DNA from: Octopus sinensis
Taxonomy: Eukaryota
Direction: 5' to 3'
Assembly: GCF_006345805.1 (NCBI RefSeq)
Contig: NC_042997.1
Span: 106,268,001 to 106,332,000 of the forward strand
DNA length: 64,000 nt
The translations under genes were made by a program, and so were the position numbers. A model generated the notes under the pieces. That model saw only the letters and a list, made by a program, of their open reading frames with translations, searched no databases and was not told the DNA's origin. Of the stretch, positions 320-58,584 are shown piece by piece. The number at the start of each line of letters is the position of its first letter. The stretch's first letter is position 1.

Positions 320-463
320 GCATCTGAAAAAGACACATCTGACGGTGCTCCATCTGGTATCAGAAGCGTTAAGGACCAAGCCAAACATCTGAACAAACTA
401 CAATCAGAAAGTGACCTGCAGAAACTAACTAGCCGAAAGCATGACAAATCAAAATCTGACAAA
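320..463 (+). CDS. SOWAH: Internal coding exon, 144 nt, phase 0-0: ASEKDTSDGAPSGIRSVKDQAKHLNKLQSESDLQKLTSRKHDKSKSDK
   Basis: Acceptor gatgttttgcag at 308-319 and donor GTAAGC at 464. Coding-like composition inside a pyrimidine-rich flank, and in frame with the next exon. Linkage to SOWAH is inferred from strand and phase. Confidence 0.75.
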
Positions 464-9830: not shown

Positions 9831-10581
9831 TTGCTTATTATGTATATACTGACTTATTAACCATATATACAATTAGCATGTCTTTGCACCTTGTATTTCA
9901 CAACATGGAAAATTAATTACACTTGCAGTTTCTCGGTTCTCGTTACCAATCATGCATGGTTTTGTAGCCTGTTCAAATTACAATGTTGTTATTGTTGATT
10001 TTTGTTTTGAAAGAAAAATGTTTATAGATTTTTTTTTCTATCTTTCTTTTGTCTTTCGGTTGTTTTTATTAAATATTATTGTTTGTTTTTCTGGCTTGAT
10101 ATTTCATTTTGCTTTTTTTTTTTCAGCATTCTTTAAAGATTCTAAAGGCGGGTATACTCACACATTTGTATAAATTCTTTACACACATATGTCAAAAAAG
10201 GGGAGCTTCAAAGGTTCTTGTTGTTTAGCCCCAGGTCAACGCTGATCAAGGAGACTTGTGATTAAAAGCATTCCTGTTGTAACCATTTCAACATTTGGGT
10301 TAGATCTAGAACTATATTATCTAATATACCATATCCTTTATTTAAAACTGTAGATGTGTGGTAGGTAATGTGAAGAATATTTGGTTGCTATTTCTATCAA
10401 ACTGATACACCACCATGTAAAGCCTTTCTCACTGGCTCAACCTTAGAAGTTGCTTAAACTATTTAATGTATCAGCAAAATCAACACACTCATTTATCATT
10501 TTTAATGTTTTGGGGGTTTTTATTTTTAAATAGGTATCTCTTAATTCAAACAATACAACCACTTGAAAAAGTCTTTATTAA

Positions 10582-17940: not shown

Positions 17941-20644
17941 TCATCATCATCATCATTTAGCGTCCGCTTTCCATGCTAGCATGGGTTGGACGGTTCAACT
18001 GGGGTCTGGGAAGCCAGAAGGCTGCATCAGGCCCAGTCTGATCTGGCAGTGTTTCTACAGCTGGATGCCCTTCCTAACACCAACCACTCCGTGAGTGTAG
18101 TGGGTGCTTTTTACGTGCCACCCACACAGGTGCCAGACAGGGCTGGCAAACGGCCACAGACGGATGGTGCTTTTTATGTGCCTCCGGCACGGGGCCAGGC
18201 GAGGCTGGCAACGGCCACGATCGGATGGTGCTTTTTACGTGCCACCAGCGTGGGGGCCAGGCAAGGCTGGCAATGGCCACAAACGGATGGTGCTTTTTAC
18301 ATGCCCCCGGCACGGAGGCCAGTCGGGGCGGCGCTGGCAACGGTCACGATCGGATGGTTTGCTTACTTGTCACCGGCACTGGTATCACAGCTGCAATTTC
18401 CATTGATGTTGATCGACTTCGATTTTAGTTCTGCTTTCTAATATCTGATTTGATTTGATTTGATTTTCACTTGTCTCAATGGGTTTTCAGAAGTGGAGTT
18501 TTGTGTCCCAAGGAGGAAAGGTATGTATAAGTTGACTGGCTACATACCAGGTAGGGGCCACGGGTCTTCTCACGCACAGCATACTTCCATAGGTCTCGGT
18601 CTCTAGTCATTTCCTTGGTGAGACCTAAAGTTCAAAGGTCGTGCTTCACCACCTCGTCCCAGGTTTTCCTGGGTCTACCTCTTCCACAGGTTCCTTCAAC
18701 CGCTAGGGTGTGGCTCTTTTGCACAGAACTATCTTAAGCCATACCAGCGCAAACGTCTCTCTTGCACACCACAACTGATGCTTCTTAGGTCCAACTTTTC
18801 TCTCAAGCTACTTACACTCTGTCGAGTATGAACACTGACATCCATCGGAGCATACTGGCTTCATTTCTTGCGAGCTTACGCATATCCTCAGCAGTCTCAG
18901 CCCATGTTTCACTACCATGTAGCATGGCTGTTCGTACACATGCATCATACAGTCTGCCTTTTACTCTGAGCGAGAGGTTTTTTGTCACCAGCAGGGGTAA
19001 GAGCTCTCTGAACTTTGCCCAGGCTTTTCTTACTCTAGCAGTTACACTTTCACCACACCCACCCCCGCTACTGACTTGGTCACCTAGGTAGCGGAAGCTA
19101 TCAACTACTTCTAGTTTTTCTCCCTGGAATGTGGTAGAAGTTGGTCTCTGCACATTTTCAGTGTTTATTGCTCCTAAGCATCTGCCACAAACAAAAACTA
19201 TTTTCCTAGTTAGCCTTTCTTTAACATTGCTGCACCTCTTATGTGTCCATAGCTTACACTTGGTGCATCTTATAGAGTTTCTACCTACACCTTTTCTACA
19301 GATCGAGCAGGGCCATCTACCTGAAGGTGTTTGTGATTGGTCTACCTTCCTACTTATTAGGACTTTGGTTTTGGCTAGGTTGATTCTAAGGCCCTTCGAT
19401 TCTAATCCTTGTTTCCACACCTGAAACTTCTCCTCCAGTTCTGATAGTGACTCAGCAGTTAGAGCAAGGTCATCAGCATAGAGGAGCTCCCAGGGGCATC
19501 CTGTCTTGAATTCCTCCGTTATTGCCTGGAGGATTATGATAAATAGGAGGGGACTGAGGACTGAACCTTGGTGGACCCCAACCTCTACCCAGAATTCTTC
19601 ACTGTACTCGTTGCCAACCCTCACTTTACTAGCAGCGTCTCTGTACATGGCTCGCACAGCTCTCACTAACCATTCATCTATCACTAGTTTCCTCATTGAC
19701 CACCAGATAAGGGATTGGGGGACCCTGTCGAAGGCTTTCTCCATGCCAACAAAAGCCAGGTACAGGGGCTTATCTTTGGCTAGGTATTTCTCCTGCAGCT
19801 GTCTTACCAGGAATATAGCATCGGTAGTACTTTTCCTTGGCACGAACCCAAACTGTATCTCATCTAAGCTAACTCTCTCTCTAATTAGTTGGGCTATAAC
19901 CGTCTCCGTAACCTTCATTACTTGATCCAGCAGCTTGATACCCCTGGTTAACTATACAGGTGACTAGGCTATAGCCGACACTACCAGATATTTTGAGCAT
20001 CTCTGCAGTAATTCCTGATGGGCCTGTGGCTTTCCCTGTTTGTAATTGCCTTAACTACTAAGGAACTGTCAACTCGGATTGCTGGTCCCTCTGTTGGGTT
20101 GACAGACTCTCTTTATCCCATTCATTTTCCTTATTCAGCAACCTTTCATAGTGGCGTCTCCAAACCTCTCTCTTTGCATCCTCATTTAGCGCAAGTGAAC
20201 CATCATCCTTGTGAACACATTTCTCTCCTACGTCACGATTCTCTCTCACACACTGTCTTGCAACACGAAATACCTCAAGTCTTTCATCCTCACAGCGCAG
20301 AACATTGGCAAATTTTTTCTTATATGCTTCCCCTCTGGCTAAATACACCTGCTTCCTAGCGTCCCTTCTGGCAGTCTGATACACTTCCCTGCTACCACCG
20401 TTCTTCCTGTTTCTTTTGTCTAATAGCCCTGTCAACAATATTGTTCCACCACGTTATTTTGGGTCTTGAGGGGACTTTGCACCAACCACAGATCTGGTCA
20501 GTGGCTCTCAGCAGGTTGTCCCTTAGAGACCTCCAGTTGTCTTCTATCCCATGTGAAGCTATACCCCCTTCTATTTCGTCAAAGGCTTCAAGTAATATGT
20601 CTCTAAATCTCTGTCCATTTGCAGGATCTTTAAGCTTCCAAGCT
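17941..20644 (-). mobile_element. 5'-truncated RTE-clade LINE with disrupted ORF, tandem-repeat 3' UTR and (ATG)n tail
   Basis: Reverse-transcriptase motifs QFGF...STTDAIF, MEKAFDRV, GVHQGSVLSPLLF and LLYADDLAL in ORF 18812-19918. Upstream fragments at 20058-20438 and 20392-20640, internal deletion near 19940, about 60-bp GATGGTGCTTTTTA repeats at 18100-18370, and a (CAT)n tail at 17941. Confidence 0.95.
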
Positions 20645-26154: not shown

Positions 26155-26208
26155 AATAAAGATGGTGCTGATGATGATGATGCAAATTCCGCTGGTGGAT
26201 TTGTCACA
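26155..26208 (+). CDS. SOWAH: Internal coding exon, 54 nt: NKDGADDDDANSAGGFVT
   Basis: Long T-rich tract then ttcttgcag ending 26154; donor GTAAGT at 26209; phase 0-0; joins directly to LSDEQKVWM. Confidence 0.85.
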
Positions 26209-27429: not shown

Positions 27430-27531
27430 CTCTCTGATGAGCAAAAAGTTTGGATGAAGCAGTCAGCTAATTGTGATTATCAAGAACTAAGTAAACTTCT
27501 ATCAAAAAATCCGTCCCTTGCTAAAGAGAGG
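27430..27531 (+). CDS. SOWAH: Internal coding exon, 102 nt: LSDEQKVWMKQSANCDYQELSKLLSKNPSLAKER (helical segment before the first canonical ankyrin motif)
   Basis: Acceptor tttttttaattaaacag ending 27429; donor GTAAGT at 27532; no stops; SOWAH-like peptide. Confidence 0.9.
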
Positions 27532-28043: not shown

Positions 28044-29455
28044 AGTGTGTGTGTCTTTGTGTGTCCCCGACTACTGCTCGAAAACTGATGCTGGTTTGTT
28101 TACATCCCTGTAAAAGTTCTGGGGTTGATTCATCCATTAAAGATTCTTCAAGGCGGTGCCCCAGTCTAAATGACTGAAATAGATAAAAAAATATGTGTGT
28201 TTGTGTGTATGTAAGTAGGTAGTTAAGTTTGCTTATTGGCTGAAACCAATAATGCCTACTACTTCCAGTCTCCGTATGTGAAAAAATTGTCATTTGTCAG
28301 GCTCTTCTATATAAGGAGATTGTAAGTGGGCATCGGTATTAATATTCACCTGACCAAGCTAAATGATTCCTTCACTTTACAGTATTTAATACTATTCCTT
28401 TCATTCATTACTGCTGTTACTTTCTATGTGTATGTGTGTAATTTTATTGAAATATTAAATCATTACTTTATGCTGTCTTGTAAAACCAAAACTATTCTAC
28501 CCAAGAGAACAACTGAAACTTCCCCACCGCCTTCCAAAACATAAATTGGATAAAAATAGTAACACGATACAGTAGTATCTAAGGCCTTACAAGAAACAAC
28601 TGAAAAAATAATTTGTAGATACAAACAAATTGCTTTACTAAATAGTTTATTATTATTGTTCTTCTTTAGGAATTTGGCCCTGCTACTTGTCTTTTAATTA
28701 CCCATTTCATTTACAAATCTGCTTTTCTCTAATATTGCTAGTCTTAGAAATATATTAACATATTTAAAATAGAGACCTTGCTGTTCATAAATTAATCCAC
28801 ATATAATTATTTGTAATTGTATAAAATGTACATATTCCACTAAGAGCAATTCTATTTAGAATTAATCTTTCCATACAATTTTTTTTACATTACATACTTA
28901 AAAACCTATTTTATTTTGTTGTCTAGGCTTGATCATTAATTACATGTTAACAGCTAAGCATATTAATGTTACAACAAAGCATATTAATTCAAATATAATG
29001 TTAAAGGGTAACAAAATGCAAAGAAATACATGAGATCAGGATTCACACATTATCACACATTTTTAACACTTTTCATATAATTTTTATACTTGTTCTGGAT
29101 GCCTGATTGTATTTAGACAAGTGCTTCCCTCACTTTCAGTTTTCTCTGTGGTCATTAAGATACAAGTCAATCAACTATACCACTTCCTTGCAAATTTGTG
29201 GCCCTATGTGAAAGATAGCAGGACCATTAGCAAGACTCGCAAAATGCTTAGCAGCATTTCATCTGTCTCTATGTTCTTAGTTCAAATTCCATTGAAGTTG
29301 ACTTTACCGTTCATCCTTTCAAGGTCAACAAAATAAATACCAGTTGAACACTGGGGCCAATGTAATCAAATTATCCCCTCCCCCAAAATTGCTGGTCTTG
29401 TGCTAAAATTTGAAGCCATTATTATTATTATTAGTAGTATTATTATTATTATTAT

Positions 29456-29487
<32 letters not shown>

Positions 29488-30586
29488 CAACAGGTCAATA
29501 TAGAGCTGAACAAAATGCCTTGTGGTATTAAGTTACATTTATTTACATTCTATGTTCCCTTCCAGGGTTGAATTTACTATTCACCCTTTTGGGGTTTATG
29601 AAATAAACACCAGACATATATTGAAATGGATTAATATGAATAACACTCCACCCTAAATTTGGGCTTGTGCCTAATAAGTATCCTTGCTACTATGGAAAGC
29701 AAACTCGTGCCAAGTATGCATTGCTGTTTTAATTGTATTACATTATGTAGCTTGAGATCTCACATTTCTCAATTCAAATCCCATATAATTGGTTTTGCAT
29801 TTTGTTAGTGCCTGACATAAATAAAATAAGTACTAAGGGTTGATTCAATGGATTTGCAACCCACAGATATTTTGTATTTCTGCCAATGTGATAAGGACTT
29901 TTGTACATGTACTTGAACACATGTTAAGCACTTAGCTAGCAAGTGAATACAATATCTCCGTTAACTATATTGGTGTTCAGCTATGAATGTTAGAACATTA
30001 AGTAAATGAACTATGGCTCTCTTCACTAGTTGAGTTCTAGTCTGTCACAGGCAACATGTTCTGAAGTTTTGAAACTTATTCCACACAGTAAATTAAATTT
30101 GAGAATGTAGATGTCAATGCCCAACCTGGAGACAAAATCATGCCTGCAGCATACATTGCACTTACAATCCATTTAACCTTTTCATTAGCCTATAGTATTT
30201 ATTTGAAAGGTGAACTTAGAGTAGTTGATTAATTTGAGGTGCTCATTTTATCATTAATTTTGTTATGAATTTACAGTTGTTGCAACTGATTCCATTCTAA
30301 ATGAAGTTTGATTAGAAAAACAGATTTAAAATATTAAACACTCCCTGAACTGCATTAGCAGTAATTAAAAAGTAAACAGCCATGCATTCAGCTCATTTAA
30401 TATGCTCTGATGTTTTTGTAATTAATGAAATTTCATTTTCTATTAAGCAATCTAATTATTTTTTTATCTTTCATTATGATTCCTGTTAAATTCTAGTTAT
30501 GTTTTCAAAAATCTATTGGCACACTTTCATTGTCTGTTTCTTTTTGCTTTTCTTTTTTTCTTTCATGCTACCATTTTGAAATCCAG

Positions 30587-30598
30587 AGTTTTATTAAT
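30587..30598 (+). CDS. SOWAH: 12-nt microexon AGTTTTATTAAT = Ser-Phe-Ile-Asn
   Basis: Long polypyrimidine tract about 30530-30564, TGC at 30566-30568, atccAG acceptor, donor GTAAGTAAA at 30599. Supplies the expected (D/S)F-I-x residues after the conserved Arg. Confidence 0.82.
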
Positions 30599-32229
30599 GT
30601 AAGTAAAGAAATTGTCTCCATTCTAATTATCATAATGCTTTAAAATTATTTTCCAGTCTTTTTTTTTTTGCTAATTGTTAGAAAATTAATGCATTCTACT
30701 TTGTTATATGCAATCACATGTGAAATGCAACTCCTAAATATAAATGGAAACAGATTGAAAATGTTAACCTTTAGTTTGATAAGACCCCACATTTTACAAA
30801 ACCTCATTAAGTTTGTTTGAGACCTAGAAGTGAACCTTTGTTATATTTTTAATACAATCATTTTAATCTCACTCCCTGCTGTTTTTGCCATGGTAATTAC
30901 TAAAAGTAAAATAAGGCATAAATATACAGAGAGCATTGTTTAAAAATATAACTAAAGCCTGCATATGGCCCAACCAATGCCGCTATAGAACATGTATGTT
31001 AAATGAGGATAATTTTATATATGTGCCCATATCCATTAGAGTCCAACAAACTGTCTATAAGGCTAAGCGCTTTATAGATGCAAAACCATTGGTCACTCTA
31101 TGACTGGCCATGTAATTAACTTCCTATAAATTATATATATATATATGTATGTATGTACGTACACACACACATGCACACACACACACTCATAGAGAGAGAA
31201 AGATGTGGTTGTGTGGTTAGGAAGGTTACTTTTAGGTTTAGTCTCATTGTGTGGTACCTTAAGCAAGTGTCCCTGTCATATAAGCAGTGTTATTCATTTC
31301 TAATTTTTCGTGAAAACATGCCTGGCAATGGGACAGTATTATCTTGCTTGGAAACCGGTGAGGGTAGGCAAGAGAAAGGACATCCAGCTACAAGTAATCT
31401 GCCCCAATAAACTCTGAGCCTTGTAGGCATGGAAAAGTAAACATTGAAAGAGCTTTCAGCTGTAGGAAATCTGCATCAACAAATTCAATCTAACCCAAGC
31501 GAGCACAGAAAAGTGGATGTTAAATGATGAGTTTTATAGTGATGATGATGCTGAATCGCAGTAGAAACTTAGTCAAAAGAAGCAGGTTGTACATATAGTA
31601 ATAGTCAACAATTGGTGAGCCCTAAATGACAGTCGATAAACCCAGCTCTGACTTCAACATAGGATGGCTTCCATTAGTATATATATGCTGAAATTTAATA
31701 TTTATTCTATGCAATGGTGGCATGATGATTAATAATGACACTGAAACCCAGTCTAGAGTTCAAAGACTAAAGAAAATTAGATAATAGATTGATCAAAATG
31801 ATATGAAGAATAAAGATACATGAATGAGGAGAGTAACACTTGAGAGCATTTAATTTAGTTTAGCAATAACAGATGTAAGAGATTCATTTGTATAATCAGT
31901 CTCAAGGACTTTAGAGAAGAGTTGAAAGAGATTAGCATTTAAGATGCTTTTCTAAAGCTGGAATGCCTTATGTCATTAACTGAGAAATTTTCTTGAGAGG
32001 ATAAGATTTTCTTTTGCTTTCTAGGAATCTGGAATAAAGGTAAAAACAAATTATTAAAATTGAGACTGAAATTGTGTGGCAGCGTAATTTTACATAATGT
32101 ATGTGTTATGTCAAGCCACAATTGGAAAGAGACAAATACACACACACACATGCACACACACAAGCAAGAAATACCTATCTGTCTGTAATTTTCTCGCCTC
32201 CCTCTCTCTCAGTATATATATATATATAT

Positions 32230-33218
32230 CATCATCATCGTTTAGTGTCCGTTTTCTATGCTGGCATGGGTTGGACAGTTCGACTGGGGTCAGGAAAGCC
32301 AGAAGGCTGCACCAGACTCCAGTCTGATTGGGCAGTGTTTCTACAGCTGGATGCCTTTCCTAACGCCAAGCACTCCAAGAGTCTAGTGGGTGCTTTTTAC
32401 ATGCTACCAGCACGAGAGCCAGTCAAGGCATTGCTGGCATTGGCCATGTTCAGATGGTGCTTTTTACATGGCATTGGCACAGAAGCCAGTCAGGACGAGG
32501 AGGCTGGCATCGACGATGTTCTGATGGTGCTTTTTATGTGTCACCAGCAAAGGGACCACAACTACAATTTCCATTTGATTGTAATTTGATTTCATTTGAT
32601 GTTGCTGTATTTGACTTAGTAGTTCTCCTCAAGCATGGCATGTTGCCCTATGATCCAAGGGTACTTTTGAGTTGGCTGGTTATGCGACACTGGTGTAGGT
32701 TACAGCTATGATCTCCCTTTATTTGCCAGGTCTTCTCAGTCACAGCATATCTCCAGAGGTCTCTGTCTTTCGTCATTTCCTCTGTGAGGCCCAGCATTCA
32801 AAGGTCATGCTTCACCACCTCATCCCATGTCTTGCTGGGTCTCCCTCTACCCCGGATTCCTTCCACTGTTTGGGAGTGACATTTCACACAGCTTCCCTCA
32901 TCTGTCCGTAATACTTGACCATACCAGCGCAAATGTCTTTCTTGCACACCACGTCCAATGCTTCTTATGTCCAACATTTCTTTCAGGGCGCTTACACTCT
33001 GTTTGTGTGTGCACACTGACATTACACATCCAGCGGATCATGCTAGCTTCATCTCTTTCGAGCCTATGCATGTTGTCAGCAGTCACAGTCCATGTTTCAC
33101 TGACATGAAGCATGGCAGTTCGCATACATGCATCATACAATCTATCTTTCACTCTGGGCAAGAAGCTCTTTGTCACCAGTAGGGGTAGAAGCTGTCTGAA
33201 CTTTGCCCAGGCAGTCCT
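32230..33218 (-). mobile_element. Shorter 5'-truncated copy of the same RTE family (C-terminal ORF plus 3' UTR)
   Basis: RVKDRLYDACMRTAMLHVSETW and GRGRPSKTWDEVVKHDL peptides; same 3' UTR and (CAT)n tail; flanked by (TA)n on both sides. Confidence 0.92.
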
Positions 33219-34056
33219 TATATATATATATATATATATTGTATATACAAATCACTCACAAGGCTTTGGCCCAGAAGGTACCTGCTCAAGATACCATGCA
33301 GTGGGACTGAACCTGAAAGCATATGGTTAGCAAGCAAACTTCTTAATCACACAGCTACATCTGCACATATATATATGGGTGCAAGCATGGTTTTATGGTT
33401 AAGCAGTTTGCTTCCCAATTACATGGTTCCAAGTTCAGTCCCACTACATGGTACCTTGAGCAAATGTCTTCTATAACCCTGGGCTGACTAAAACCTTTAA
33501 GGGATTTAATAGTTGGAAACTAAAAGAAGCTCGTCTTTGTGTGTGTGTTCTTATCTTGACACCACCTGATAGTTGTACATGTGTGTCACTATCACACAAG
33601 AAATGTTATTCATTTCCAATCTTCTGCTAAAACATGTTAGGTCATGGGGAAATAACCTTGCTTGGAAATAGATGAGGATTGATGACAAGAAGTTGCATCT
33701 GGCCATAGAAAATCTTCCCTGATAAACTCCATCCATCAAGTTTTTTCTCACAGAGCACTAGTTAATTCTAGAATATAACAGAGGACACTTAGCCAAGTGG
33801 AAACCATGGAAATCACATAGAAACCATGCTTTTTGTGTTGACTATTATAGTATTCAGAGGGATAGAACATTGAGTGCTTAGTCAATATACATTGCTTTGT
33901 ATCAATATCACAATGTGTATATGTGCTTGTGTATATTTATTTGTTTAGCTGTAAGAGAAGCTGAAGATCAGTCAAAATTTGTAATATATGTATAATGTCG
34001 TTTTTCTTTCATATTTTGGTATTACTGTTGAATTTCTGAATTTGGAATCACTTCAG

Positions 34057-34059
34057 GGT
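34057..34059 (+). CDS. SOWAH: 3-nt microexon GGT = Gly
   Basis: cacttcAG-GGT-GTAAGTAAA at 34049-34068 with a pyrimidine tract at about 34001-34017. Provides the Gly of the ankyrin G-x-T-A-L-H motif, in the correct order. Confidence 0.72.
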
Positions 34060-35961
34060 GTAAGTAAATTTTCTTTTCTCATTGTTAAAAAAAGATATGC
34101 AAATCTTTGAAATAACTCTTTATATTAAAAGCCTCCCTGTTATAATGTATTTGGGTCAGTTGTTGGCAGTAGGAAAGAATAATACTGAAGCCAATTAATT
34201 TGCATTCTGTCTGAAAGTTGTATCAATAAGAAGCCATTGTAATAAGCTTAGTGTTCCTGTATGACAAAGCTCTCATTTATCAATTAATCTTTTTCTATTC
34301 ACAACAAAATGTGTTTCTACTAGAACCAACAACATTCTCAGAAATTATTGGAAAATGTTGAGTACAAATGTTTATCTCATGCATGGAGATGTTCTAGGAT
34401 TTGATCTAGTGTTTTAGAGTTATTTGATTAAAACTGATTGGCATGGGGGTTAGTTTCCGAAGCAGTTTTTACAAATCTGGAAAATATAGTTTTCTTTTTG
34501 TAATTGAATAATGAAAATAGAAATAAAGTTTTCAAAAATCATTTTGTTACTCTTTAAACTTTAGTTGCAATTACTCCCTGTCTACTTATCCAGACATAGT
34601 TCTTTTCTGCTGATTGGGGCTGCTAAAATACATATGGGACTTAAATATGCTTTAGTGGGGTTGAAACTGTTGTCAGTGCACAAACAAGATCACCATTACT
34701 GTGCCCAGTGGTAAGCTGGCAAAATCATTTGCATGCTGGACAAATTTTGCCAAGGTCAACTTTGCCTTATATCCATTTGGAGGTCGATTAAATGAGCACC
34801 AGTTGAGCTCTGGGTCAAAGTAATTGACTAGCCTTATCCTCCCAAATTGCTGGTAAAAAAATTACTGTGCCCAACAAAGGCATAACATTTTCACTCTACT
34901 TTGTTTATTTCTTTGATGATTGAATTTTTCTGCTAAATTGTGATGTAGCTTCATCAATGCTGAGAAGAGTAAACTTGTCATACAATTTTTGAAATTTTGC
35001 TTTTCAGTTGCTCAGTCTGTTCATCCATGCTAGTGAAGCTTCTTTCCCACATCTTGCTCATGACTTGTTAAGTGTTAAGGTTAGAGTTATGGATTAAGAT
35101 AAACATGCATTGTCCATTTCGAAATGATATTTACTGTTATGATTATTTTAAAAGACATCATCATTGCAGGTGGAACCACTTCATACGAGTGTCATCTCTT
35201 GTGTTCTTAGGAATATTATATTTCAAGAAAGTTTCTTATTAGAATATAGTATATATTACATAGTGTTTTGTTGTGTGAAGCGCAGCATATCACTATATGT
35301 ATTTTGCATTGTATGCCTCAGCCTTTTTGCTATTGCATTGGTTGGAGATGATCTTTTTATTAATAGTTATATATTAGTTTAGTACATTAAGTGACAAAGT
35401 GAAGATAGCCACTCAATATGAGTTTGAAACATGAAAAAAAGCAGTATGATGCTGAAGAAATTGTAGGCTTTTATATGCATGTGTTTTGCAGATGTGGTGG
35501 CCGGTGGCCAAACACAGCAGTAACTATGACCTGTAGTCAAAATTGAATAGAAGTCTGTAAAAGATAAAATGATATTAAAGCTGGATTCATTCATTAAGCA
35601 CTGCAGTCTTGCATCACAAAGTTGTTCTTAACCTAGCATTCTTCAAGATATGTGAATCAAAGGACAGTTAAGAAATGCTTAAGATTAGTTACACATAGCA
35701 AGCCTAAATTAAGTATCACTGGGCAGGCCCTTCTGACTTAGCAGCCCTGAGACTATAGAAAAGAGTGCAGTAAAGGACATTTGATGTTAATATCTTGAGG
35801 CAGATATCAGCCGAAAAGAAAACCCCTAAAACAGAAACCTTAGAAAGCCCTAGATGTTTGGAAAATATTTTATCAGCGACCTATGCTCTCAGAGACGATG
35901 TGATTAATAACACCCTAACTAAGAAATAAAATGAAACCTATTATTCAGTAAAAGAAATTAA

Positions 35962-36462
35962 CCCTTTAGCATTCATACTACTCTGTCAACTGTATTACTG
36001 GCACTCCATCAATTACAATGACAAGGGTTCCAGTCATTCCGATCAAGGAAACAGCCTGCTTGTGAAATTAACGTGCAAGTAACTGAGCACTCTACAGACA
36101 CAGTGTGTGACAAGGCTGGACCTTTGAAATACAGGTATTACTCATTTTTGTCAGCTGAGTAGACTGGAGCAAAGTGAAATAAAGTGTCTTGCTCAAGGGC
36201 ACAATGTGTCACTGGGAATTGAACTCATGACTTTGCAATCATGAACCAAATACCCTAACCACTAAGCCACACACCTTCACTGTGTGTGTCAACTATAATG
36301 CTCGGTTATTCACATTGTTTTGTGGTTTTGAGATTTCAGTGATGTGATTGTTTATTTTACAATGACATTGTAGAGTAGGTGTAAGAGGTTGGATACAACC
36401 AGTTTGAACATTAAATGGGTGAAATATTTTGGCCGGATATGACAGGTTTAAATGTTAAAGGG
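35962..36462. mobile_element. piggyBac-type MITE interrupted by a minus-strand SINE (about 35995-36290)
   Basis: TTAA|CCCTTTAGCATT start and TTAAAGGG|TCAA end; same internal sequence as 10582-10804 in the opposite orientation. Confidence 0.7.
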
Positions 36463-36696
36463 TCAATGTGCCTAATAACATTTTGTATCTGACATAGTTT
36501 GAGCTTATGCTCTATGATATTTGTAATCTTAATATATTTAGTTTAACATAAATTTATGTCTGTATGCATGCATATATATGTTTGTTAACTTTTTAATGTA
36601 TTTCATACTTTTTTCACTACTCTCTTTCCCTATTTTTTTTTATGACTTGCTAATTTATCCTGGAACTCTGAATATTTATTTGGTTTCCTCAAACAG

Positions 36697-36699
36697 TAT
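36697..36699 (+). CDS. SOWAH: 3-nt microexon TAT = Tyr
   Basis: tttggtttcctcaaacAG-TAT-GTAAGTAAA; branch-point-like CTAAT at 36650-36654; upstream pyrimidine tract about 36601-36641. Provides the aromatic residue of G-[YF]-T-A-L-H. Confidence 0.72.
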
Positions 36700-39494
36700 G
36701 TAAGTAAAACATTGCTATATTTATTTACTATATTCAATTTTTTTTAGGTTTTCAAGAATCATATTTTTCTTTTTTTTTTTTAATATCATACCTTTGGCAT
36801 TATGTCATGCTTGAGAAGAAGACCCATCAAGCTAAGTAAAATTGCATTTGTGACAGATACTGGTGTCATGCAAATTGGTACCCATGCCAGTGGCACATAA
36901 TAGCCCCCCAATGTCAAATAAATGGCATCCATCCCAGCAGCACATGAAAACACCCATTACACTCTCGGAGTGGTTGACGTTAGGAAGGACATCCAACCAT
37001 AGAAAACCGTGCCAAATCAGATTGGAGTCTGGTGCATCCTTCCAGCATGCCAGTCCAGTCAAACTGCCAACCCATGCCAGCATGGGCAACGGATGTTAAA
37101 TGATAATGATGATGATGATCACTGCTAAGGACAATGTAGAAACTTCTTCAGACCACTTTAACTTGATTGTATTAGTAGTATACGATTTGCCTTCTGGGTT
37201 TATAGGCAGGTACTGAAATGGCCAAAGATAGATTTAATTCTTAACATAATGAGACTTTATACCTGAATAAAGTTTTAAACAAGAACTAATTTAAAGCATT
37301 TTTTAGAATGAGAATGTTCTTTTAAGAATATAATCACGGGATTTTATTTTCATTTCAAGATTTGTATTGCTTCATTTTCCTCAGTCTCTTCTCTCTGCCT
37401 GTTGCTTCTGTTATTATTTCTACATTTCAATTCTTTACAGTGAAGGACATATCTCTACCCAGCTCACTCAATTCATTCATCTCCTCTTTCTCTTGTCTTT
37501 TCACTATGTCTTAAACTTCTAGACTTTGTACCAAACAATGAAGAGTAGCAAAATTTTCTTTATTTTGTGACCTTGTCACACTCTTGTTCACTGGCATAGA
37601 GACCATCACTAGTTTCCTTGGATTCCTCTCTTTCACTTTGTACCAGGTACGTGCCGTCAGTAATTACTCAGAGTAGGCCTTTATGTAGTAAAGCACACAC
37701 AAATTAAATGAAACACAGGCATGAGACTGATTTGAAGGCAGATTTACTTATAAATGTGAGATATTAAGCTTTAAAAATACTGACAAATGTCTTATTTCTG
37801 TCCGTGGCTTTCCATTACTGAGATATTTTATGAGCTAATATTAAAGGTGTTCAGCTCATGAACAGGAGGTTGTATGTTCAATTCTAGAACCATATGGTGC
37901 ATCATATCCTTGAGCAAGGCACTTCATTTCATGTTACTTCAGTCTTGTCAGCTGTAAATAAGTACAAGCTGAGTACCAGGACAGGTGTCTCTCTCTTTCT
38001 AGCTCTCAAATTCTGGATGTTCCACTGAGTCCTAAATAATGAAATATGTGTGCAACAATGAATTAGAGGTGAGGGATGAGAAATCTAATGATAGTTTAAG
38101 TTCATGAAAATCTATTAAGATTTTAAAAATTAAATAAAGTTTACTTACTTTTCATGGAACACAGACTTAATCAATTTCATGAACTTTAAGATTGTTGGTA
38201 CTAGAACCAAATAATCAGATTCTTGTTTCTCCATAAATGATCATGAAAAGTTCTTTAAATGGTTTGTTTTAATAATTTTCTCTATATTATTTCCATCATC
38301 AACAACACTAAACAAATATTGCATTTCTTTGATTTTATTATAACATGTTACATATTAGCTAGCTTTAATTAACGTATGTATATAAAACAAGATATTTTGT
38401 TGTCTAATTTAAGTTTCAAGATTAATAGTGTTTCAATTAAATGACAGACATTCAAGTAGCCAGTCAAATCATCACAATCATCATCATGAAATGTTTATTA
38501 GAAACCACAAAACATTGGATATAATTGTCCTCGTTGATTTTACTATATAAATTAGATACTAAGTCAAGTTAATTAGAGTACCTGTCTAACTGTGTCACTG
38601 CACTGGAATATCAATAACATGAAGATAATTCTCTTTAAATAGGTACAGTGCAGTTCTAAAGTTCACCATTGTTTTTATGGCAATACTGAAGTCCCCTTAG
38701 GGATATGGTCCATAATGAATTCTCCAATTGTGATTGTGTGTAACCAACCATTCATTCAAGTATATTTAGTATGAATGCAAGAGTCAATTGTTAGATTAAC
38801 TTAAGAAAGTAAATCTGCAGGAGAAAGCCTCAAATCAACAACAAAATGTTCTTGTTTGACCTGTAAAACTTAGCCCTCTCTCCCCCTCTCTCACTCACTC
38901 TCTCTCTCTTCTATCACACCCAGTCATCTTAAAGGGAAAAATATATTCAATAATGTTGTCCGAGACACATAATGCCAAAAAAACTCTGGATGGCTGAGGC
39001 CAGAGTATTTTTGAAAACAAGATGTGCCCAAACTGAGCTGTCCTATGGTTAAACAACAACAGCCAAATACACCATCATCATCCTGCCATTATGATATAAT
39101 ATAACCATGTTAGGCATTGCAGAAATCCAGAGTACACATGTATATGGTAATTGTGTCTCGCTTATCTAATTTTTAATATCTCATTAAAACTTGATTTCAT
39201 TCAGTTACTATTTATTCTATTTATAAGTCATTTAAATGCTTTCTTGTGTATATATATCTCGTATTTTTTTACTTGATTCAGTCATTAGACTACAGTCATG
39301 CCGGGGTGCCACCCTGAGGAATTTTTTTGTCAAATGAATAAACCCAAATACTTATTTTGTTTTTAACCCTGGTACTTATTCTATCAGTCTCTTTTGCCAA
39401 ACTGCTAAGTTACAGAGACATAAACACACCTACATCAGTTGTAAAGCAGTGGTGGGAGACAAACATAAACACAAAGTCACAAGCACTTATATAT

Positions 39495-55103: not shown

Positions 55104-55193
55104 ACTGCACTTCATTGGGCAGCAAAACATGGCAAACCAGATGTTGTTAAATTATTGTGTGGAAAGCCTGGTGTTAACGTGGACCAAAAAACA
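55104..55193 (+). CDS. SOWAH: Internal coding exon, 90 nt: TALHWAAKHGKPDVVKLLCGKPGVNVDQKT (ankyrin repeat core)
   Basis: Acceptor attttctttgcag ending 55103; donor GTAAGTAT at 55194; textbook ankyrin TALHxAAxxG...VVKLL...G..VN pattern. Confidence 0.93.
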
Positions 55194-55296
55194 GTAAGTA
55201 TTGTTTTGTTTTGATTATGTTTAATGAGAAATATTGCATGTGGACTAAAAACATAGACATAGCTGCATAATAGTCCTTGTGGAGAAATTGCGATAT

Positions 55297-56488: not shown

Positions 56489-58584
56489 TGTCTACTGTTT
56501 TTTTGCTTGTATGAGTTGTACAGAAGGTTGGAAAGGAAATGGTATTCATTTACAACAATCATGCGACATCAAGACAAGGTGATACAGACATAGACACACT
56601 TATATGGAAGTGCACACAATGGGATTCTTTCAGTTTCCATCTACCAAATCCACTCACAAGACTTTGGTCAATCCAGGGCTATTGTAGAAGACACCTCTTG
56701 TACAAGGTGCTGTGCAGTCGGACTGAGCTCCAAACTATGTAACTGTTGATCCATGTGCTGTTATATTTGCTGTATATTATGCACTGTTGTTATCGGTATA
56801 TCTGGAGTTAGTAGGCCTCAGCTTACAGATGTGGTGGCACTACTGCCATGCCTGCAGTTATTGTTTTCAATGCTGATTCATCAGGAATTGTGAGCTAGTA
56901 CTGATACATCTGCTGACACATATATAGCCGTTTATCACTTCTCTCAAATTGGTACCATTATTAAACTAAACCTGTCGCCACTACCACCACCACTGCTTCT
57001 TTCTTTGCTTTGTGTTCCAACCACCCAACAACGACAATGGAGAAAATTATGTTAAGTACACAGATTACTGTAGTCTTTATGTTAGAATCTGAACTACCAC
57101 AGAAGAGTTCACGCACTTGTGTATGTATGTGTATATATGTATATACTGTTTGTGCATGTACATGTTATAGGTGCATATGTATGTGTTGTTTGTGTATTTC
57201 TGCTTGTATTGAAGAAGAGCAGAGAAGAATAAAGCTTTTTACATAAGTTGTGTAAACATTAAATTAACTACTTTATATAAAAACCAACATTAATAACAAA
57301 TGCTGCATCAATAACAACAATAGAAAGACTTACTCAGATTAAAAAAGAAAAAAAAATAAGAGTAAAATACTGCTAAGTGATAAATAAATAATGAGATAAA
57401 GTTCTGAGTTTAGAGATAAGCAATGCAAACCAAATTTATCTTATTTCAACATTCAAAAAGTCGTTTTTGCTTTCACAACAGAACTTATTTTCCTGAATTG
57501 ATTTTCAAAATATATATGTTACTTTTTAAATAAATAAAGATGCAGCATGCATTTATTTATCTCTGTTACCCATGCTTTCATAATGTCATTGTATTTAAAA
57601 CCACCTGCTCTTCACTCTTCTCTCTCATCTGCATCCATCAGGATACTCAGCCATGTTTGTTTACCCATAAACAGGCAGCAGGAGTAGGAAGAGGAATAAT
57701 TTGTGCTGTAAGCAATGGCAGCACTAAGGAATCATGCAGTACTGAGTTCAGTTCTTCTTCTATCAGAAAAATGTTATCTATGAAAGGCCAACATCTTACC
57801 CATAGAAGAATTACCCCTCCGTTTAATGTTACAGAAGCAGACACGGCTTCTGTGGTTATAAGTTTGCATTGCAACCGCATGGATCTGGGTTCATACCCAT
57901 TGTGTCTTCTGCTATAGCTTCAGGCCTACCAGTAATTTGCAAGTGAATTTACTTAACAGAAACTATATGGATATAGGCGGCAAGCTGGCAGAAATGTTAG
58001 CATGCTGCTGTAATATTTAGTGGTATTTCGTCTGCCGCCACATTCTGAGTTCAAATTCCGCCGAGGTCAACTTTGCCTTTCATCCTTTCGGGGTCAATAA
58101 ATTAAGTACCAGTTATGCTCTGGGGTTGACGTAATCAACTTAATTCCTTTGTCTGTCCTTGTTTGTCCCCTCTATGTTTAGCCCCTTGTGGGCAATAAAG
58201 AAATAAAAAACTATATGGTTATGCATGTCTCATGCATACAGACACACATATGAGTGTGTGTGTATCACGTATAAAGCACCCAGCACAGTCTATAAAATGG
58301 TTGGCATTAGGAAGAGCATTCAGACATAGAAACAAAGCCAAATCAGACTAGAACCTGGCACAGCTCTCTGACTTGCCAGCTCAGATCTATCTGTTCAACC
58401 CATGTCAGCATGGAAAATGGATGTTAAAGGATGATGATGATATATATATTTGCAACTACAATATTTTATATTTTATTTCTACTTCCATTCTCTTATTTCC
58501 CTCTATATTCCCTATCTCCTCCTTTTCCATAATAATTCCTTACTTCAAACTCAAATATTTACCTCTGTTTAATCATCTCACATC

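Follow-up and report, generated by a model that had tools for sequence, protein, structure and literature searches.

A window of 64,000 nucleotides (nt) of Octopus sinensis DNA (contig NC_042997.1, positions 106,268,001 to 106,332,000) carries part of the octopus SOWAH (sosondowah) ankyrin-repeat gene, and a 27.6-kb intron of this gene holds an array of three microexons of 12, 3 and 3 nt, which are the subject of this analysis. Homology searches with the translations of the larger window exons (...ASEKDTSDG...KSDK, NKDGADDDD...FVT, LSDEQKVWMKQSANCDYQELSKLLSKNPSLAKER and TALHWAAKHGKPDVVKLLCGKPGVNVDQKT) led to a SOWAH ankyrin-repeat protein, and it was found that the window exons are 100% identical to the O. 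sinensis SOWAHB isoforms at NCBI. All four of these isoforms contain the string ...LAKERSFINGYTALHWAAKHG..., which equals the window exons plus the three microexons joined in phase 0. A diagnostic residue reads SESDLQKL in the window and in O. sinensis, and SESDLLKL in O. vulgaris. The SOWAH winged-helix domain (PF25877) is among the precomputed Pfam domains of these proteins, and the ankyrin families were found by scan; the gene thus combines a winged-helix domain with two ankyrin repeats and is orthologous to named SOWAH proteins, with the winged-helix exons falling outside the window. When the concatenated window exons were used as a protein query, a single match was obtained, the transcript-derived fragment P0001. 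A search of a representative library was dominated by large multi-ankyrin proteins and recovered the Argonauta orthologue P0086, and no match to the exact pattern of the TALHW exon was found among metagenome contigs.

Each of the three microexons is preceded by CAG (30584-86, 34054-56 and 36694-96), with a donor 12, 3 and 3 nt downstream, respectively (Table 1). All three are in phase 0 and flanked by AG and GT, and isoforms X1-X4 all contain their residues (SFIN, G and Y). The Pfam ankyrin repeat comprises residues 282-314 and starts N-G-Y; positions 1-3 of the repeat therefore come from the final codon of the 12-nt exon and from both 3-nt exons. These are core residues of the repeat and do not form an optional insert.

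An earlier note on this DNA had described three microexons that end in T and share one 9-nt donor, GTAAGTAAA, that the larger exons do not have. This was confirmed: on the plus strand of the window, GTAAGTAAA occurs at 30599, 34060 and 36700 only, with T before each site, and the donors of the larger exons, which end at 463, 26208, 27531 and 55193, are GTAAGCTGC, GTAAGTTAT, GTAAGTTTA and GTAAGTATT. The number of occurrences of TGTAAGTAAA expected on both strands together is 0.47, and three were reached in 1 of 100 shuffles. The pattern AG-N12-GTRAGT has a single site in the 27.6-kb octopus intron, and AG-N3-GTRAGT marks the Gly exon, the Tyr exon and one decoy; an ordered pair of Gly followed by Tyr or Phe appeared in 1 of 1000 dinucleotide shuffles of the intron. 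The combination of donor, acceptor and reading frame is far beyond chance. The identity of the three donors at +8/+9 (p ~0.007, from our own base-composition estimate) is weaker evidence than that combination.

Table 1. Features of the window and of orthologous SOWAH introns (a slash marks a splice junction).
Feature	Sequence or product	Position	Strand	Remarks
SOWAH coding exon	..ASEKDTSDGAPSGIRSVKDQAKHLNKLQSESDLQKLTSRKHDKSKSDK	320..463	+	donor GTAAGCTGC; 100% match to O. sinensis SOWAHB isoforms
Alternative 21-nt exon	CATTCTTTAAAGATTCTAAAG (HSLKILK)	10127..10147	+	in isoforms X1-X3, not X4
SOWAH coding exon	NKDGADDDDANSAGGFVT	26155..26208	+	donor GTAAGTTAT
SOWAH coding exon just upstream of the microexon array	ends ..LAKER	27430..27531	+	donor GTAAGTTTA
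Decoy	AG/ATT/GTAAGTG	28319..28321	+	in no annotated isoform; upstream AG 3 nt off; +7 = G
AG-free 3′ splice-site region of 12-nt exon		30495..30586	+	pyrimidine tract ~30524-30577; TGC 30566-68
12-nt microexon	AGTTTTATTAAT (Ser-Phe-Ile-Asn)	30587..30598	+	Asn = position 1 of first ankyrin repeat
Donor of 12-nt exon	GTAAGTAAA	30599..30607	+	
AG-free 3′ splice-site region of Gly exon		33970..34056	+	pyrimidine tract ~34001-34017; TCTGAATTTGG 34035-34045
3-nt microexon	GGT (Gly)	34057..34059	+	ankyrin repeat position 2
Donor of Gly exon	GTAAGTAAA	34060..34068	+	
AG-free 3′ splice-site region of Tyr exon		36540..36696	+	pyrimidine tract ~36601-36641
Motifs upstream of Tyr exon	TGCTAAT (branch-point-like); TCTGAAT; TTTGG	36648-36654; 36667-73; 36679-83	+	
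3-nt microexon	TAT (Tyr)	36697..36699	+	ankyrin repeat position 3
Donor of Tyr exon	GTAAGTAAA	36700..36708	+	
SOWAH coding exon	TALHWAAKHGKPDVVKLLCGKPGVNVDQKT	55104..55193	+	remainder of ankyrin repeat 1; donor GTAAGTATT
Cuttlefish array	12-nt AGTTTTATTAAT/gtgagtaaa; GGT/gtaagtatt; TAT/gtaagtaag			
Abalone array	12-nt AATTTCACAAAT/gtgagtaca; GGT/gtaagtatt; TAT/gtaagtagc			
Sea anemone array	12-nt GACTTTACATCG/gtaagtaaa; GGG/gtgagtaca; TAT/gtaagtacc			
Snakehead fish array	12-nt GACTTCACCTCA/gtgagtatt; GGG/gtaagtttc; TTT/gtaagtaca			
Drosophila persimilis array	12-nt GATCCAGCAACG/gtaagtttg; GGC/gtaagtaca; TAT/gtaagtatt			
Second 3-nt pair, abalone	His, Gly	L002 12272-74, 12562-64		
Second 3-nt pair, sea anemone	His, Gly	L003 9623-25, 9799-801		
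Second 3-nt pair, snakehead fish	His, Gly	L004 14198-200, 14595-97		

Several public SOWAH protein models leave out precisely these residues, namely those of Argonauta (P0086), O. vulgaris (P0214), Actinia (P0158), Channa (P0162) and salmonids. The D. persimilis model GL24938 (P0169) leaves out both the residues and the preceding exon, Haliotis cracherodii (P0152) reads NFTN--TALHW where H. rubra reads NFTNGYTALHW, and a Myzus model is without the Gly. In the affected models, to which a Neoarius model (P0172) also belongs, some or all of the tiny exons are skipped or the intron is read through, with the loss of 2-8 ankyrin-repeat residues or the gain of spurious inserts. The first ankyrin repeat is short in the models of the sea anemone, the snakehead, D. 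persimilis, Haliotis cracherodii, Argonauta and O. vulgaris, and in many SOWAH models it is 2-6 residues that are absent from it, because the tiny exons were missed. This shared pattern of omissions suggested a conserved and often overlooked exon array, and the orthologous introns of cuttlefish, abalone, a sea anemone (Actinia tenebrosa), snakehead fish and D. persimilis were therefore examined.

It was found that each of these five introns contains one 12-nt exon, followed by one 3-nt exon for Gly and one 3-nt exon for Tyr or Phe, so that the 12+3+3 array is conserved as separate exons in all five other species. The pattern AG-N12-GTRAGT is unique in each orthologous intron, and AG-N3-GTRAGT identifies the two expected exons only, plus one decoy each in octopus and cuttlefish. 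In D. melanogaster, the sowah exons TAT, GGC and AACGGG are annotated in FlyBase (PMC8042270 Table S4). In abalone, anemone and fish, ankyrin repeat 2 has a tandem pair of its own: its GYTPLH exon is preceded by two further 3-nt exons, for His and then Gly, all with GTRAGTA donors. In Drosophila this pair is fused into a single 6-nt exon, AATGGG (L005 33554-59). This distribution indicates that the 12+3+3 array is ancestral to cnidarians and bilaterians.

The omissions could also be taken at face value, with the microexons as annotation artefacts and an mRNA in which TALHW follows ..KER without a gap, as the Argonauta and O. vulgaris models have it; five models that omit the residues (P0086, P0214, P0158, P0162 and P0169) would agree with this. 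We find this hardly credible because ordered, frame-preserving and perfectly placed exons with strong splice sites are present in six species, the six residues are present in transcript-derived proteins of other species (P0157, P0167 and P0173) as well as in FlyBase, and the ankyrin repeat would otherwise be without positions 1-3.

The 12-nt exon is identical at 12/12 bases between octopus and cuttlefish, synonymous sites included, and the 24-nt block CAG/exon/GTRAGTAAA (30584-30607 of the window, L001 71394-71417 in cuttlefish) has one mismatch within surrounding intron that is unalignable, which hints at constraint at the nucleotide level. Between the octopus and cuttlefish intron flanks, no alignment extends anywhere beyond CAG/exon/GTRAGT(AAA). 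An alternative source of the donor identity would be shared ancestry of the flanks, by segmental duplication, gene conversion or the insertion of related intron-generating elements, in place of selection for splicing. Three identical 10-mers (T/GTAAGTAAA) inside 6 kb are in line with such an origin; however, the similarity ends at the 9-mer, and the regions upstream of the two octopus 3-nt exons gave an alignment score of 17 against a shuffle null of 19.9, that is, no excess similarity. Introns occur at the same positions in cnidarians and must therefore be ancient. No similarity extends past the donor, and flank duplication or gene conversion was rejected on that ground; we regard common descent as a very improbable source of the donor identity.

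The splice sites of 18 3-nt, six 12-nt and one 6-nt exons were compared with those of ordinary exons of the same genes (37 donors and 35 acceptors). A GTRAGTA donor (+1 to +7) was present in 17/18 of the 3-nt and 5/6 of the 12-nt exons, relative to 9/37 controls (Fisher p = 9e-7), and the mean number of intronic U1 matches at +1 to +7 was 6.8, 6.3 and 5.3, respectively (p = 2e-6). There was no gain on the exon side (0.9 matches vs. 1.0 in controls). The median AG-free zone upstream of the acceptor was 80.5 nt for the 3-nt exons (range 47-155 nt), 66.5 nt for the 12-nt exons and 41 nt for the controls (p = 9e-7), with the zones of the 3-nt exons exceeding those of the controls in all six species.

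The pyrimidine tracts differ in both strength and position. The median score of the best tract was 16 for the 3-nt exons, 23 for the 12-nt exons and 10 for the controls (p = 0.0016). Binned pyrimidine profiles were used for tract position; the 3′ boundary of the best tract had no discriminating power because weak control tracts fall anywhere. In these profiles, pyrimidine content peaked at -42 to -33 (0.74) in the 3-nt exons and at -12 to -3 (0.74) in the controls (distal minus proximal, p = 0.002), dropping to 0.63 beside the AG in the 3-nt exons; the tract sits about 25-70 nt back from the AG. In octopus, the best tracts lie at -63 to -10 (12-nt exon), -56 to -40 (Gly) and -96 to -56 (Tyr) relative to the exon starts, which confirmed the positions of the displaced tracts described in the earlier note, and the first AG upstream of each exon lies at a distance of 92, 87 and 157 nt, respectively. 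Long AG-free stretches like those of AG-exclusion-zone 3′ splice sites are therefore present in octopus and across the species compared. Local RNA structure at the three octopus acceptors was no more stable than in shuffled sequences (z = +0.87, +1.29 and +0.09).

The same features separate true exons from decoys. Ten AG-N3-GTRAGT decoys from octopus, cuttlefish and fly had AG-free zones of 2-36 nt, with A at +7 in 2/10, whereas in the first array of these species the zones of the true 3-nt exons, six in all, were 85-155 nt long. At every locus examined, AG-N3-GTRAGTA combined with a long AG-free zone picked the true exons and excluded the decoys. Strong donors, set-back tracts and AG avoidance thus make up a real signature that is functional and under selection; it marks orthologous exons in six species from four phyla.

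Other details of the octopus sites are not conserved. The 9-nt donor did not hold up as a unit, since only GTRAGTA (+1 to +7) is kept: neither cuttlefish nor other phyla retain AA at +8/+9 in their 3-nt exons (+7 to +9 read ATT, AAG, AGC, ACA and others), and the base at -1 in the 18 3-nt exons is T in 11, G in five and C in two. Among candidate branch-point motifs, CTRAY matches occur at -47 of the octopus Tyr exon and at -59 to -86 in the anemone and are absent for several exons. Comparison of upstream k-mers showed TTCAT/TTTCA in 12-13/19 tiny exons vs. 6-9/35 controls (p ~0.001), which was lost after correction for 1024 pentamers, and no k-mer was enriched downstream. As a side observation, the set-back tracts often end in TTTCAT(G), like an acceptor with AG changed to AT (30557-30564, 34006-34012 and 36594-36600 in the window; also in L003, L004 and L005); TTCAT alone lies upstream of 12/19 tiny exons vs. 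6/35 controls, which is not significant after multiple-test correction.

The earlier note had also pointed to a TCTGAAT...TTTGG motif upstream of both 3-nt exons. The motif is indeed present at 34035-34045 and 36667-36683, but TTTGG is a common pentamer (1.5 per kb), and a shared 7-mer between two AT-rich spacers of 60-100 nt is expected about 0.3-1 times by chance (our own base-composition estimate). The shorter TCTGAA occurs within 100 nt upstream of 4/4 cephalopod 3-nt exons, at -22 and -30 in octopus and at -66 and -13 in cuttlefish. With a background chance of about 0.04-0.05 per 100 nt, the cuttlefish pair has p ~0.0025, uncorrected for the motif variants tried, and CUGAA fits 4/5 positions of the CURAY branch consensus. 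TCTGAA could therefore be a cephalopod-specific element that serves the 3-nt exons as a branch site or enhances their splicing, in addition to the general architecture. We consider this improbable because its position shifts between orthologous exons whose flanks are otherwise unalignable, it is not found upstream of the 12-nt exons, and CTGAA occurs only once among 15 tiny exons of other phyla (at -81 in fly). TCTGAA is at present a weak lead, possibly a branch site.

The architecture of the array is that published for SRRM3/4-dependent microexons, which have stronger 5′ splice sites, stronger and more AG-distant pyrimidine tracts and branch points, and long AG-exclusion zones, and for which a UCUC...UGC enhancer is also described (PMC8797185; bioRxiv 10.1101/2024.09.17.613571; PMC12871342). 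The suggestion of a dedicated inclusion code made in the earlier note therefore stands in part: strong U1-complementary donors and set-back pyrimidine tracts form a selected signature in six species, but because these are published microexon features, the code is not new in kind.

The neural part of that suggestion, in which the exons would depend on SRRM3/4 (eMIC), with UGC serving the 12-nt exon and a UGC-independent TCTGAAT...TTTGG serving the 3-nt exons, has several points in its favor. The strong 5′ splice sites, long displaced tracts and long AG-exclusion zones of the array match the published eMIC signature, a TGC lies at -21 of the octopus 12-nt exon as the earlier note had stated, and TCTC-type motifs are somewhat enriched upstream (12/19 vs. 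9/35, uncorrected). In addition, a 46-nt fly sowah exon (chr3L:12538996-12539041), separate from the 3-nt and 6-nt exons, is listed as eMIC-sensitive (PMC8797185 supplementary file 4), so sowah is not wholly outside the eMIC programme. However, the UGC element characteristic of eMIC targets near the 3′ splice site is not enriched in the array: between -40 and -6 it was found in 8/18 3-nt exons vs. 12/35 controls. Of the octopus exons, the 12-nt exon has a UGC at -21 that is missing in cuttlefish, the Gly exon has none, and the Tyr exon has only one at -49, within TGCTAAT. The D. melanogaster TAT, GGC and AACGGG exons are catalogued among the microexons with constitutive splicing (PMC8042270 Table S5 Sheet 2). 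The eMIC domain and neural microexons are reported to have originated in bilaterian ancestors (PMC8797185), whereas the array is present in the cnidarian Actinia tenebrosa and so does not share that origin. The eMIC programmes are reported to be almost completely rewired between flies and mammals (PMC8797185). Finally, the residues are present in all four O. sinensis isoforms, which are predicted models. A neural eMIC switch for the SOWAH tiny exons is unlikely, given that the fly orthologues are listed as constitutive, that a cnidarian has the array, that UGC is not enriched and that the residues are structural.

The array can be placed among other known systems of very small or unusual exons. 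SRRM3/4 (eMIC) neural microexons resemble it in being 3-27 nt long and frame-preserving, with strong U1-complementary 5′ splice sites, a long displaced pyrimidine tract, a long AG-exclusion zone and no strong local structure; the SOWAH array differs from them in the lack of UGC enrichment, the listing of the fly orthologues as constitutive, the conservation across phyla including a cnidarian and the encoding of core fold residues. The D. melanogaster sowah exons GGC and TAT (3 nt) and AACGGG (6 nt) are orthologous to the array, with GGC, TAT and AATGGG at matching places in D. persimilis; they share GTAAGTA donors and set-back tracts with the array elsewhere, differ in that the second pair is fused to 6 nt and appear only as supplementary-table entries (PMC8042270). 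Plant microexon clusters (PMC8831610) likewise consist of very small constitutive coding exons, long conserved and often missed by gene prediction; they belong to another kingdom and to other genes. Recursive splice sites or zero-length exons (AG/GTAAGT) also have a strong GTAAGT donor that almost abuts an acceptor AG in a very long intron, but in SOWAH the two are separated by 3 or 12 nt, which the mRNA keeps as codons. The class of 3′ splice sites with distant branch points and AG-exclusion zones was defined on ordinary alternative exons. The SOWAH 3-nt exons are like it in their AG-free zones of 47-155 nt and in the distance of the tract from the AG, and differ in that SOWAH branch points are motif matches only. 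In the literature, we found no paper with both "sowah" and "microexon" in the main text and no description of the deep conservation or shared architecture of the SOWAH array.

Several other observations were made on the remainder of the gene. The 21-nt exon at 10127..10147 is followed by GCGGGT (AAG/gcgggt) and therefore has an apparent non-canonical GC donor. The fragment P0001 reads ..DQKT-VSI-GFTPLH and so continues 9 nt beyond 55193, with VSI being the translation of GTAAGTATT; this extension (55194-55202) indicates an alternative weak donor 9 nt downstream, with GTTTTG at 55203. Where P0001 has VSI, the NCBI isoforms have FA (X4) or F (X3). No AG-N3-GTRAGT was found between 55194 and 64000, so the tiny exons for FA or F are probably past the window end. 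Intron 1 contains a 368-aa reverse-transcriptase open reading frame of a retrotransposon (18812-19918, minus strand). Copies of a repeat whose translations contain FPCWHG-like strings lie in several introns (~17968-18441, 32100-32711, 36832-37099 and 58390-58416), and the C terminus of P0001 (…NVFPCWHGFNKQHYDIQ) resembles an exonised copy of this type of repeat.

The comparisons above show the exons, their conservation and their statistical signature. The explanation that we consider reasonably probable is that these genuine 12-, 3- and 3-nt SOWAH coding exons of an ancestral array are recognised mainly via core splice signals, with inclusion probably constitutive or nearly so and with the eMIC domain of Srrm234 probably not needed. 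A mechanism can be proposed from the arrangement of these signals. A GTRAGTA donor forms seven contiguous base pairs with U1 small nuclear RNA on the intron side. On a 3-nt exon, U1 pairing at -3 to -1 would span the whole exon, with the acceptor AG at -5/-4, and AG recognition at the acceptor would clash with U1. Because the codon dictates the exon side, which also overlaps with the acceptor, donor strength would have to come from the intron side, hence GTRAGTA. With a strong pyrimidine tract, and presumably also the branch point, about 25-70 nt or more upstream and no AG between, U2AF65 and U2 could assemble and commit the intron away from U1, whose site lies 3 nt past the acceptor; the acceptor AG would then be chosen as the first downstream AG at the second catalytic step, and the flanking introns would probably be removed sequentially. 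For the shortest exons, it has been proposed that U1 and U2 hinder each other sterically and that the downstream intron is removed first (PMC10250204). The reported similarity of eMIC targets to U2AF1-repressed exons (PMC8797185) fits a model in which commitment takes place at a distance from the AG.

Several points weigh against recognition by core signals with constitutive inclusion. The O. sinensis isoforms are Gnomon predictions, and the control sets are small (35-37 sites) and drawn from the same genes. Exons that depend on eMIC typically have just this architecture, so in bilaterians inclusion could still be helped by eMIC or by a different factor. The abalone 3-nt exons have conventional pyrimidine tracts adjoining the AG, so a set-back tract is not obligatory. 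The octopus Tyr exon has a good CTAAT at -47 (in TGCTAAT) downstream of the main tract; the displaced tract of this exon may thus lie upstream of its branch point and might be an enhancer or PTB site, not a U2AF65 site.

Taken together, these results make the SOWAH array real, ancient and often mis-annotated, and a fresh instance of a known splice architecture, not a new code. A broader reading, which we put forward tentatively as a possibility short of even odds, is that the 12+3+3 array and the second His and Gly pair preserve a pre-bilaterian, eMIC-free mode of recognising ultra-short exons, in which no more than GTRAGTA, a pyrimidine tract set back from the AG and an AG-free zone would be needed to include 3-nt exons constitutively, and which eMIC would later have co-opted for regulated neural microexons. 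How the spliceosome includes exons below its own footprint is still debated, mostly with eMIC-dependent neural exons as the model. The SOWAH locus is a natural set for comparison: its 3-nt exons are arranged in arrays, are apparently constitutive, at least in flies, and have been conserved for more than half a billion years, including in a lineage reported to be without eMIC, while their flanks have diverged fully save for GTRAGTA, the placement of the pyrimidine tract and the avoidance of AG. Because of this apparent constitutive use, deep conservation and divergence of the flanks, the minimal cis-requirements for including such exons should be directly testable by minigene.

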